NCBI GenBank assembly: GCA_021613535.1
Contig: CP075496.1
Span: 3,844,001-3,908,000, forward strand
Length of the DNA: 64,000 bases
Direction of reading: 5' to 3'
DNA from: Adineta vaga
Lineage: Eukaryota; Animalia; Rotifera
Below are positions 59,576 to 64,000 of this stretch, piece by piece. The notes under the pieces were generated by a model. That model saw only the letters and a program-made list of their open reading frames with translations, did no database searches and was not told the origin of the DNA. Numbering within the stretch: position 1 is the first letter of the stretch; each line of letters opens with the position of its first letter. The position numbers and the translations under genes are program-made.

Positions 59576-60867
59576 CATTTTCATGTAGAACAGTTTGATC
59601 TAATTACAAAGAATGGCGATTTATGGAAGTCTATTTTTTGTGGTTTTAATTATCATATACCATTATATTACTTTTGTTGTGTGCTAATGTTTTCCTACCT
59701 TTGAATGCAAGATTCAAGGTACAATTCACTTGAATATGATATTTATAACTGGATCTTTTTAACAGTGTTCTTCAGTATAATCTTGATTATGGCCCATTTT
59801 TCGAATATAAAGTCAGAGTCAATCTCTTATGTATTCTTTCAATAGTTGTAAATTAATGATTTTACTGATGGTTAGTAAGATTCATATCGAATGCCTTCCA
59901 CATCTACAAGATCATTTCTAAAACTCTTTTGAAATACTAACTGTGCTAGTACTAACTCTTCAGAAGTTTCTTGCGACGTGTATTACTTTAATGAGAAGAA
60001 TTTGTGGTTGATATTGTATTTCACTTTTTATCTACTATCGAATATCATCGAATATAATAGTTACATACTACACCCAAGTCTCTATCTTCGCCCCAATTAT
60101 TCATTTATGATATTTAAAGTCATTCTATGATCGTAGGTGTTAAAAATGAATAAATAATCCATTATAAACATAGGATGATACATTGATATCGTACATGCAA
60201 ATGTAAACAAACATTTAGATGATTGAATATGATGAAAGGCGACCAAATTGGTATGTTTTATTTTGCGAGCTTTCGCTATTGCACGTGATCATGCACGTCA
60301 AAAGAACGTATTGAATAATATTTCAAACATTTATTTGATCTATAACAGAAGTCGATCGTCTTTTATCTGTCTTGACATCGGATGTCGATACGTGCCGAAT
60401 AAAACACTTCGGTAAAACTACCATTGTTACTATATCAAATTAGTGATTAGCATGAATTAAAGTATGAAAAATCTTTGAGTTGTACAATATATATGCTGAC
60501 TGTATATCGATCAACTAGTATATCAAAAGCAGAATGATTTTTAATGTAGAGAACCAACGGTATTTAAAAATATATTTCTCATTCAAGTTAGCATCATTGA
60601 TAAAATATGATTCAAAATTTTCATAGATTGAGAAAGCAATATTTGTAGTATTATCATACAATTCTTGTGTTTGATTAAAGAAAGAAGTTACCAAGTCCTT
60701 GACTGAGACTTTATGTATAAGAAAAAAAACGAACAGACAAATAATAGACGCGACGAAAGGAAAAAAACAAAAATCATCTTCTTTTGCTTTTATACACGAA
60801 AAAAAAACAAATTGTTGCATACACACACAGACATAGATATATTCACGTATAGGCTTTTTCTTTCTTC

Positions 60868-63178
60868 TTAGAATTCATCGTTTATTCCAAATGTTTCATG
60901 TGGTCCGTTGCCATTATTATTATTATTTGTTTCATTCTCACCTCGATGATTGCCTGTTCGACGACTGCGATCACGTTCGCGATCACGATCACGTGAACGA
61001 CGTTTTGAAGAATCTTGACGATCTCGAGATGAACGACGGTCACTACGACGTTCATTTGAACGTGAACGAGTTCGACCTAAAGATAAAGAACATAAGATAA
61101 TAGATTTCAATTCGAATTGGAACATTATCAAATACATACGACGTTTATGTTCTCGACTTCGACTTCGTCGGCGATCTACAATACATAAAATACTTTTGCT
61201 TAAAAAATTTCAATACAATAACTTTACCTCGAGATCTTGATCGTCGTTTTCGATCGCGTGAAGTAGATCGTCGTCGTTCATCGCCTACGGGACGTTTACC
61301 TCCAGGTAGACCACCTCGGCGTGTTGAGCCTAGACCACCACCTAAACAAAAAATTATGATTTTGAAATACACATTGATATATTCAAAATACAAACCTAAT
61401 CGTCTTGGTCGCCATCCTTTGACTGTTCGACCTCGTTCAACATCCACAACAACACGTCGACCATCAATTTTGCGTCCATCTGCTCGTTTGTATGCCGCTG
61501 AAAGTGAAGTGCTTACCGTCAACATAATAAAATCTCATCGACCATTTGACCATGTTTTTTATATTCTTACCGCATTAGACTTACCCTCATTGCTAAGCTT
61601 ATGAATAGACTGCTTTTTTTCTTTTTGGTTTTTCAAAAGACAGAGATCGCAGGAGATGAGAGATAGAGAGTTTCATCAAACTTACAAATATTTGTTTCGT
61701 TTTATCGTAAATAAAGAATGGGATGGGATGATAGTAAAGAATACAAAAATGTGAAAAGAAAAAGTTTTATCGGAATATGATCCTCACCTGTATGTCATTT
61801 GATTATTTTACCTTTTATTTTACTTTTGAAGGATACATTATCGGTGAATATACTCTACAAACGTTTTTCAAGCTTACCTATGACTTTTGTCTTTCCTTAC
61901 CCGATTTATGTTTATACAAACCTCGAATCATTTTTTTACTTTACGTGGGAAAAAGCGCTTGGCGCTGAATAGTTTTACCATGAGAAAAGAAGTCCAATAC
62001 ACCTGTCTGATTCTTCCATAGTTTATATATGTAGATTTATACGTACATAAATGGTTTTTCAGCAAAACAACTGAGTGTAACTTACACGCATCGGTGCAAT
62101 TGCGTGTCTAGAAGACAAACAGGCAACGGACAATAGCCTCGAAACAAATGCGACGATTTAAACCGAAATCTATCAACTACTGCATATCGAATGAAAATGA
62201 AGTAATGAACAAACCTGTATATGAATTCGAATGCAAAAAAACAAACAGACGGACTCAGTCAGGCTTACTCAGGTGAACATTTTCAAAAGAAAACTCTCTT
62301 TCATTTTCATTGAATCTCTCAATCGAAAAAGCAAACAAGGGAAATAAACTATCATCTCATCGTTTTCTTACTCGAAATAAAAAGGCAAAACGATAGTTAT
62401 CTTAAAACACCTACCGTGCATATCAGCTTCTTTTTCATATTCAATAAATGCATAACCACGTGGTTTACCCGTTTGAACATCATGCACTAAATTTATCTAA
62501 AATAATTCATTCAATAAAGAGATTTTTCAATGTCAATCTTCACATTAACCTACACTTTTTATTTTTCCATAAATTTCAAATTCACGTTTCAATTTCATTT
62601 CTGATGTATCATAATTCTAAAAGAAATACAATAATTTAATAGTTTTTTTATGCATATTATCTTACTAATCGAGCAATAAACAATGTTTTGTATGGATCTG
62701 CTGTTGCTTTTTCGTTACTATTTGGATCCCCTAGATAAAAAGATCGATTAATAATTTTTCTGAAAATAAATTTAAACAAAAAATGAAATATTACATAGAG
62801 TTACTTCTTGTTCGAGTTTAAGAGCTGCTTTTTCCATTTTTTCTCTAGCCTAGAATATAATTAGACAATAATGAATTGTAATTATTGAAAAAATATCGTT
62901 AACTTACTTTTCGAGCAATTTTCTCTTCTTTTGTTTCAATTTTCGTTGGTGGTGGAGTTTCATGTGCTTCCTAGAAAAAAACAAGGCAATCCAATAGATA
63001 AATTCTTTAACAAACTTTTCGTTTTCGTTCTTACTTCGAATAAATTCGAAAAATCTGATAAACCTCCGTAAGGTAAACGTTTTTTTTCATGTGGTAATTT
63101 GTCAATTGGCGGTAAAAATGGAATTGATTCACGAGGTGCAAATAATGCCAGGAGATTTGGTGGCAAAAATTGTGTCAT
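60868..63178 (-). CDS. SNRNP70: U1 snRNP 70 kDa protein, multi-exon
   Basis: [37 protein letters not shown]…[46 protein letters not shown]-rich tail. Confidence 0.97.
61498..62414 (-). promoter_or_regulatory. 917-nt SNRNP70 intron carrying an array of 5' splice-site-like motifs (candidate autoregulatory element)
   Basis: Nine GTAAG and one CAG|GTGAG on the sense strand; no GTAAG on the opposite strand. Confidence 0.75.
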
Positions 63179-63339
63179 TATTCAATGATTAAGATAAAAT
63201 ACAAATCTAGAAAAGATCAACAAAATCAATATTGTGATTTTCCTTTCAATAAATTTTTGTTGTTGTTAATAAGTCTTTTTATTTCTTGTTCTCATTATAG
63301 TAATAATAAAAAGAAAAACAAACAAATAATAAATATTGT

Positions 63340-63807
63340 TTACGCTTTCTTTTTCGAGACACCAACAGTACGACCACGTCGACCGGTTGTTTTCGTATGT
63401 TGACCACGTACACGTAAGTTCCAGTAGTGACGAAGACCACGATGAACACGAATCTTTTTCATACGTTCTAAATCTTCACGAACTTTGGTATCAACATTGT
63501 TCGATGTTACTTGAGAGTATTTGCCATCTTTAATATCTTTTTGTCTGTTGAGAAACCAATCTGGAATTTTATATTGACGTGGATTGGCAATAATAGTTAT
63601 AACACGTTCAACTTCTTCTTCGGTCAATTCACCGGCACGTTTTGTTGCGTCAACATCAGCCTTACGAATAACAACATGAGCAAAACGACGACCAACACCT
63701 TTGATGGCTGTTAAAGCATAACCAACTTTTCGACGACCATCAATGTTTGTGTTCAAAACACGAAGAATATGTTGAAATTTCTCGGGTTGAATCAATGGTG
63801 ATGACAT
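63340..63807 (-). CDS. RPS18: 40S ribosomal protein S18 (uS13)
   Basis: [17 protein letters not shown]…IKGVGRR…[12 protein letters not shown]…HRGLRHYW[25 protein letters not shown]. Confidence 0.99.
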
Positions 63808-64000
63808 TTTTTATTAGAGATGAGTCTTTCTCTTTTTAAATATCTAAAAAGGAGATGATATATGAATGGTATCATAGTTATGATTATGTAGCAAGATCAA
63901 GATTGTAATTGTAATGAACAAGAGAAAAAGAATCAATGAAAATGAAGATGAAAAAATAAACAAGTAAACAAAGATATGAAATAGTTTTTGTCCACTGTCA

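Follow-up and report, generated by a model that had tools for sequence, protein, structure and literature searches.

The U1-70K gene and its long intron

The stretch of DNA analysed here, called the window in the following, comprises 64,000 nucleotides (nt) of the bdelloid rotifer Adineta vaga (assembly GCA_021613535.1, contig CP075496.1, positions 3,844,001 to 3,908,000 of the forward strand). At 60868-63178 it carries the gene for U1-70K (SNRNP70), a protein of the U1 small nuclear ribonucleoprotein particle (U1 snRNP). This gene and all features described for it lie on the minus strand, and positions are those of the window. The gene model, with ten coding exons and 310 codons plus stop, is based on exon-by-exon open frames, on Pfam and on RNA contigs. 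Our main observation concerns its sixth intron: it diverts transcripts of the gene into an unproductive form, which contains a premature stop and part of the intron.

Pfam recognised U1snRNP70_N in the peptide of exon 1 (E = 9e-14) and RRM_1, an RNA recognition motif (RRM), in those of exons 5-6, and the reading frames of all ten exons, checked one by one, were open. Intron 6 (61498-62414; 917 nt, GT..AG) is the gene's only long intron, the remaining nine measuring 49-64 nt; the joint 61497/62415 that results from its removal was present in contigs of the public RNA runs X1, X5 and X7. A first reading of the window, made from the sequence only, had already singled out this intron as the only long one and had placed it inside the RRM after DMH, and both statements held. 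Indeed, the intron interrupts RRM_1 near profile position 52 of 70, in phase 1. Exon 6 (62415-62496) ends one base past ...DMH, on the first position of the codon that follows, and the donor behind it, with the authentic 5' splice site ACG/GTAGGT, is shared by both splice choices of the intron. Exon 7 (61396-61497; AYKRADGRK...) supplies the second half of the RRM, as supported by RNA contigs and by its open frame.

DNA and exon-peptide searches of the whole 100.8-Mb, six-contig genome found no second copy of U1-70K. Bdelloid genomes are known for their retained ancient duplicates, and a single copy would fit a dosage sensitivity of this gene. Since the gene is single-copy, there was no paralogue to compare it with, and relatives were therefore sought outside the genome. 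A snoRNA or other known RNA hosted in the intron was considered and rejected, as the Rfam scan of 60300-64000 gave no match at E <= 1. A long open reading frame on the sense strand of intron 6 was not found either.

Splice choices and conserved motifs

Contigs of four public runs were aligned to 60800-63300, and the joints discussed here are the 15 best-supported of 25. Those of X1 and X5 are almost the same as the window, X7 represents a diverged relative, and X6, a true metatranscriptome, has a relative among its sources. We take the contigs to be RNA-derived because all nine short introns of U1-70K were spliced out in those of the four runs. For the long intron two joints were found: the normal one, 61497/62415, and an alternative one, 62107/62415. 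The latter has GT..AG ends, removes 307 nt (62108-62414) and was seen in X1, X5 and X7 and, with a one-letter offset, in X6. Its inner acceptor is the AG at 62109-62108, which follows a pyrimidine tract. The other 610 nt of the intron (61498-62107) are left unspliced, as evidenced by unbroken contigs that continue from 62107 through the normal acceptor into exon 7 (61469-62098 in X1, 61469-62107 in X5, 61534-62108 in X7 and 61394-61674 in X6).

Contig depths, which are rough measures, suggest that a sizeable share of U1-70K transcripts takes the inner-acceptor route. In X1 the alternative joint had a depth of 24 and the normal joint one of 37.5, with 44 over the retained part and 12 over the upstream 307 nt. 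The corresponding depths of alternative and normal joint were 5.2 versus 18.5 in X5, 8.5 versus 52.9 in X7 and 9.8 versus 7.2 in X6. Past the alternative joint the frame reads D-T-Q-L-H-R-C-V-stop. The stop, a TAA at 62082-62084, thus comes eight codons past the joint and is embedded in the first of the 5' splice-site-like motifs described below (GTG TAA GT). The product would terminate within the RRM and, because three spliced introns follow downstream, the stop fits the rules of nonsense-mediated decay (NMD).

The sequence-only reading had placed the alternative acceptor elsewhere, at 62216-62215 (joint 62415>62214), and had expected an in-frame TAG after 12 codons. Neither detail survived: that joint is absent from the 15 best-supported of 25, and both the acceptor and the stop in use are the ones just described. 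What did survive was the proposed switch to a retention or NMD transcript, insofar as the unproductive form, with its stop and its retained 610 nt, was found in RNA contigs.

The sense strand of intron 6 carries nine GTAAG and one GTGAG, the antisense strand none. These nine positions, the GTGAG at 61783 and the empty opposite strand had all been noted beforehand, and all proved exact. GTAAG is the most enriched 5-mer of the intron, with nine occurrences where window frequencies predict 0.71 (Poisson P = 7e-8). Among 20,000 dinucleotide-preserving shuffles of the intron none reached nine (maximum 7, mean 0.98). Our background consisted of the window and 200 kb of sampled genome sequence (264 kb together), scanned on both strands in 917-nt stretches; the highest count in any other stretch was five. 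No repeat family that would account for the motifs was found.

Six U1 snRNA genes above the Rfam cut-off are present in the genome, and all three that were read begin with ATACTTACCTG. Since this is the canonical start, the intron motifs are complementary to U1. Two of the six genes, separated by about 250 nt on contig 6 (C6:4233946-4234518, L105), are arranged as a divergent pair, and the rest lie at four other places.

For comparison we used a metagenome contig, L005, found by a search with exon 1. This related contig is rotifer-like, shows 88% identity in exon 1, and has the same gene layout and an intron of 862 nt at this place. Identity to L005 was 78-97% in the exons and 51-68% in the nine short introns. 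Within the long intron it was distributed very unevenly: the first 270 nt showed 62%, like a neutral intron, the 37 nt preceding the inner acceptor 100%, and the retained 610 nt 82%, an exon-like value. A block of 51 nt (62100-62150) is 100% identical and comprises what is presumably the branch region as well as the pyrimidine tract, the inner AG and the next 8 nt. In addition, some 170 nt at 62150-61990 are more conserved between the window and L005 than most exons. Because the 51-nt block exceeds what a branch point, a pyrimidine tract and an AG need, and because conservation extends over these 170 nt, the comparison suggests that 62150-61990 may contain binding sites for factors additional to U1. 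The premature stop has a counterpart in L005, a TGA in the same frame, and the last 90 nt or so of the intron are almost identical.

Eight of the ten motifs fall into the retained part, at +22 to +596 nt from the inner acceptor, and each matches 7-9 of the 11 positions of the U1-complementary consensus. We refer to them as decoys 1 to 8. All eight are kept as GTRAG in L005, six of them identical and two with an exchange of A and G at +3 only, which preserves the identity of a 5' splice site. Arbitrary 5-mers of the retained part pass the same test in 37% of cases, which gives a probability of about 3e-4 for eight out of eight. Conservation of the motifs, which the sequence-only reading had put forward as a check across rotifers, was thus seen in this rotifer-like relative. 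Decoy 1 (62081-62085, CGT/GTAAGT; GTGAG in L005) is separated from the inner acceptor by a 22-nt segment (62086-62107) comparable to the human 'exon 7a'. It is followed by decoy 2 (61896-61900, CGG/GTAAGG) and decoy 3 (61873-61877, TAG/GTAAGC), both conserved, and by decoy 4 (61783-61787, CAG/GTGAGG), also conserved and the best match to the 5' end of U1 (9 of 11). Decoy 5 (61681-61685, TTT/GTAAGT) is the second that reads GTGAG in L005. Decoys 6 and 7 (61566-61584; AGG/GTAAGT and GCG/GTAAGA) lie 14 nt apart and are both conserved. Decoy 8 (61512-61516, ACG/GTAAGC) belongs to the almost identical end of the intron; it adjoins a branch-like motif, TTGAC, and lies 13 nt upstream of the authentic acceptor, where a distance of about 12 nt had been given before. 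The two motifs of the upstream part, which is removed by the inner acceptor, fared differently from each other: the one at 62264-62268 is kept in L005 as GTGAG, the one at 62367-62371 is not conserved. As judged from this alignment, the inner acceptor, the stop and the motifs have demonstrably been under selection, and functional U1 sites would be expected to show the conservation seen in the motifs.

An inverted repeat of 14 nt with 86% complementarity joins 61870-61883 with 61587-61600. It could pair decoy 3 with sequence beside decoys 6 and 7, and it may be due to chance.

The two exon peptides that flank the intron were compared by tblastn with 80 metagenome loci, and many eukaryotic loci among them had an insert at exactly the same codon. 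Several of these inserts are rich in GTRAG in the sense direction and occur in loci that we call animal-like, an assignment made from the N-terminal peptides of U1-70K alone, which are similar in type and differ between loci. Eleven sense and no antisense motifs were counted in L045 (1204 nt scanned), eight and none in L035 (796 nt, to the contig end), eight and one in L022 (544 nt), and twelve and four in L013 (2323 nt). L036 had eight and two, L044 seven and none, and L050 five and one. From the divergence of the peptides we infer that several animal lineages are behind these motif-rich inserts. The arrangement is not rotifer-specific, since such similar inserts stand at the same codon in several animal-like loci. 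In L022, L036 and L050 the upstream spacing is cDNA-like (384-393 nt, with 390 expected), and intervening sequence is kept only at this codon. The insert of L022 has no initial GT, runs into a stop after 14 codons and then holds eight GTAAG, six of them GTAAGT; read in this way, L022 is the same inner-acceptor-plus-retention form as in the rotifer. Fungus-like loci (L052-L083) have a short intron of 104-225 nt at the same codon that is essentially free of the motifs: among the seven checked, two had one sense GTRAG and the rest none. It seems that the intron position is older than the motif cluster, or that the cluster was lost in the fungus-like loci.

Some observations on the surroundings of the intron may be added. 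The first 70 nt of the 3' untranslated region of U1-70K (60800-60869) are 94% identical to L005, well above the neutral introns, and may be a conserved element. Just upstream of U1-70K, on the same strand, lies an intronless gene for ribosomal protein S18 (uS13; 63340-63807), with an intergenic region at 63179-63339. One RNA contig of X5 terminates with a poly(A) run near 63206, 28 nt before the ATG of U1-70K (63178), and the U1-70K contigs of X1 stop short of 63152-63235. The two genes lie very close together, as in an operon, and trans-splicing may act on the U1-70K mRNA.

A feedback reading and its rivals

The abundance of U1 snRNP sets the choice of 5' splice sites and the protection of transcripts from premature polyadenylation, and how cells keep its supply steady is a basic question. 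We consider it probable that intron 6 is the rotifer counterpart of the unproductive-splicing feedback switch known from intron 7 of human U1-70K. Every structural feature of the human switch that sequence and RNA contigs can address is present at the rotifer locus.

As the RNA contigs show, transcripts are spliced from the one donor (62414) either to the authentic acceptor at 61498, giving full-length U1-70K, or to the inner acceptor at 62108. In the proposed switch intact U1 snRNP would bind the motifs, and its binding at decoy 1, 22 nt past the inner acceptor, would activate this acceptor. U1 bound to the later decoys would keep the remainder unspliced, an effect to be expected above all of decoy 8, by the likely branch point and 13 nt from the true AG. 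The stop-containing RNA would then be degraded by NMD and/or be kept from leaving the nucleus by the 5' splice-site motifs it carries. As a result, more functional U1 snRNP would lead to less productive U1-70K mRNA, which amounts to a negative feedback on the supply of U1 snRNP.

Several points weigh against this reading. Binding of U1 snRNP to the motifs, a dependence of the choice on the level of U1, U1C or U1-70K, and sensitivity of the product to NMD are steps that we infer by analogy. For classic exon definition, the 22 nt between acceptor and decoy 1 are a short distance. The decoys may be in use as true donors, the joints considered being the 15 best-supported of 25; the contigs themselves (Logan) give presence and rough depth only, and the RNA label of X1, X5 and X7 was guessed. 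That the rotifer intron and human intron 7 stand at the same position is presumed. Finally, the rotifer decoys are mostly strong (GTAAGT-like) and spread over 600 nt, whereas human sites A and B, which depend on U1C, are weak and lie close together. For this reason the logic of the switch may differ from the human one.

The unproductive form might also be read as a detained-intron reservoir. In this case the nucleus would store U1-70K transcripts, to be completed or degraded later under signals other than U1, such as stress, desiccation, temperature and kinase signalling, and the motifs would be nuclear-retention elements only. The abundance of the retained part in the contigs, which represent steady-state RNA, fits a stable nuclear species. 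Moreover, Lee and colleagues reportedly found in 2022 that 5' splice-site motifs in unspliced RNA act as nuclear-retention signals that need U1-70K, which we count in favour of a reservoir. Human SNRNP70 intron 7 has likewise been treated as a retained or detained intron (PMC7373989). The inner-acceptor form is, however, a dead end and no reservoir, because its 22 nt and stop cannot be removed again to restore the frame. The two ideas also overlap, since retention that acts via U1-70K would amount to a feedback on this same protein. All in all we regard a mere reservoir as rather unlikely.

A generic protection of a long intron appears to us still more doubtful. The genome's other introns measure around 55 nt, and in an AT-rich intron of 917 nt U1 sites might simply suppress premature cleavage and polyadenylation (telescripting), with no feedback involved. 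U1 sites are in general enriched in the sense direction of transcribed regions, and AATAAA occurs in intron 6 once in sense and four times in antisense, both of which would agree with such a role. Telescripting leaves unexplained, however, why the inner acceptor is 100% conserved, why the in-frame stop is conserved and why the alternative joint is abundant. Nor does it sit well with the unconstrained first 270 nt of the intron, or with a motif density some ten times background and the highest in the 264 kb sampled. Chance, a relic of a repeat or transposon, or a hosted non-coding RNA can practically be dismissed: these have no specific support, no shuffle came as high, repeat families, Rfam matches and a long sense open reading frame were lacking in the searches described above, the motifs are the centre of conservation, and unrelated loci show the pattern again.

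The feedback reading can be carried further, into territory where we are tentative and see the odds as leaning somewhat to the negative side. The switch might be ancestral to animals, and possibly older in view of the reports of retention in plants, with one homologous intron position throughout. Its invertebrate form would then be a multi-site sensor that titrates U1 snRNP and in which the decoys have three jobs: the first would activate the inner acceptor and carry the stop, the middle ones would keep the RNA unspliced or nuclear, and the last would occlude the authentic branch site. If this were true, the presence of eight or more sites could render the switch steep instead of graded in its response to the concentration of U1 snRNP.

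Comparison with known systems

The sequence-only reading had pointed to the regulation of vertebrate SNRNP70 through a poison exon, and the architecture found here indeed matches that of the switch described in 2013 for intron 7 of human U1-70K (PMC3798272). There, an inner 3' splice site is often used, with a premature stop as the consequence. A number of cryptic 5' splice sites just past this acceptor bind U1 snRNP and are required for the acceptor to be activated, and are rarely spliced themselves; the rest of the intron stays unspliced, and the transcript is removed by NMD. The human switch relies on U1C and has been conserved in both mouse and zebrafish (PMC3798272). The rotifer locus shares with it the gene itself, a well-used inner acceptor with an immediate premature stop, a cluster of cryptic 5' splice sites just past this acceptor that are probably likewise rarely spliced, an unspliced remainder, and the strong conservation of acceptor and sites. 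It differs in scale and layout. The rotifer intron has 917 nt, the human one 3.2 kb, and about ten motifs, eight of them distributed over the whole 610-nt retained part, stand against three adjacent sites and one farther downstream in human. The first rotifer decoy follows the acceptor after 22 nt, whereas human exon 7a measures 60 or 72 nt. A stop embedded in a decoy and a decoy that abuts the authentic acceptor are seen in the rotifer only.

A related concept is the decoy-exon model, in which non-productive sites deep within an intron engage the terminal splice sites and thereby cause retention; SNRNP70 intron 7 is one of its cases (Parra et al. 2018, PMC6097662; 2020, PMC7373989). The element in SNRNP70 is a decoy exon of 60/72 nt, and retention affects mainly the sequence downstream of it (PMC7373989). 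Retention downstream of the decoy is also what we observed in the rotifer, where the intron contains a unit resembling a decoy exon, with the acceptor at 62108, a length of 22 nt, a GTAAGT behind it, and both ends conserved. The model was demonstrated by antisense blocking in human erythroblasts, whereas the rotifer case is built from sequence and RNA contigs.

Plants offer a further parallel: one particular intron of U1-70K is retained, the resulting transcript contains a stop, and a link to U1-C has been suggested. Retention of the sixth intron of plant U1-70K was reportedly described by Golovkin and Reddy in 1996 (cited in PMC11489095). In Arabidopsis, the isoform in which the sixth intron is kept falls in amiR-u1-c plants, in which U1-C is knocked down, and a conserved loop was suggested (PMC11489095). 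The same logic is also met in the minor spliceosome, where the U11 snRNP splicing enhancer (USSE) occurs in the genes for U11-48K and U11/U12-65K (Verbeeren et al., as discussed in PMC3798272). According to that discussion, 5' splice-site motifs arranged in tandem are occupied by the cognate snRNP and then switch on a 3' splice site upstream of them, which yields an unproductive isoform of a protein of that very snRNP. The motifs, however, are U12-type there, and the genes are others.

Within the library searched, we found no description of a U1-70K switch in rotifers or other invertebrates. For the human switch of U1-70K and U1C, conservation has been described within the vertebrates, and there is a hint of it in plants (PMC3798272, PMC11489095). 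Our data suggest that the circuit is much older than vertebrates, because the same parts are present in a bdelloid, where they are in use in RNA, and because several other animal-like loci have motif-rich or retained inserts at the same codon. The rotifer version is compact, with 917 nt in a 2.3-kb single-copy gene, and is therefore convenient for dissection in minigenes; it could help to address the number and placement of U1 sites and whether a site next to the branch point blocks the true acceptor. As a concept such a switch is not new, since the human mechanism was published in 2013. What is new, in comparison with this known system, is a compact multi-site version in a rotifer, with evidence from both RNA and conservation.

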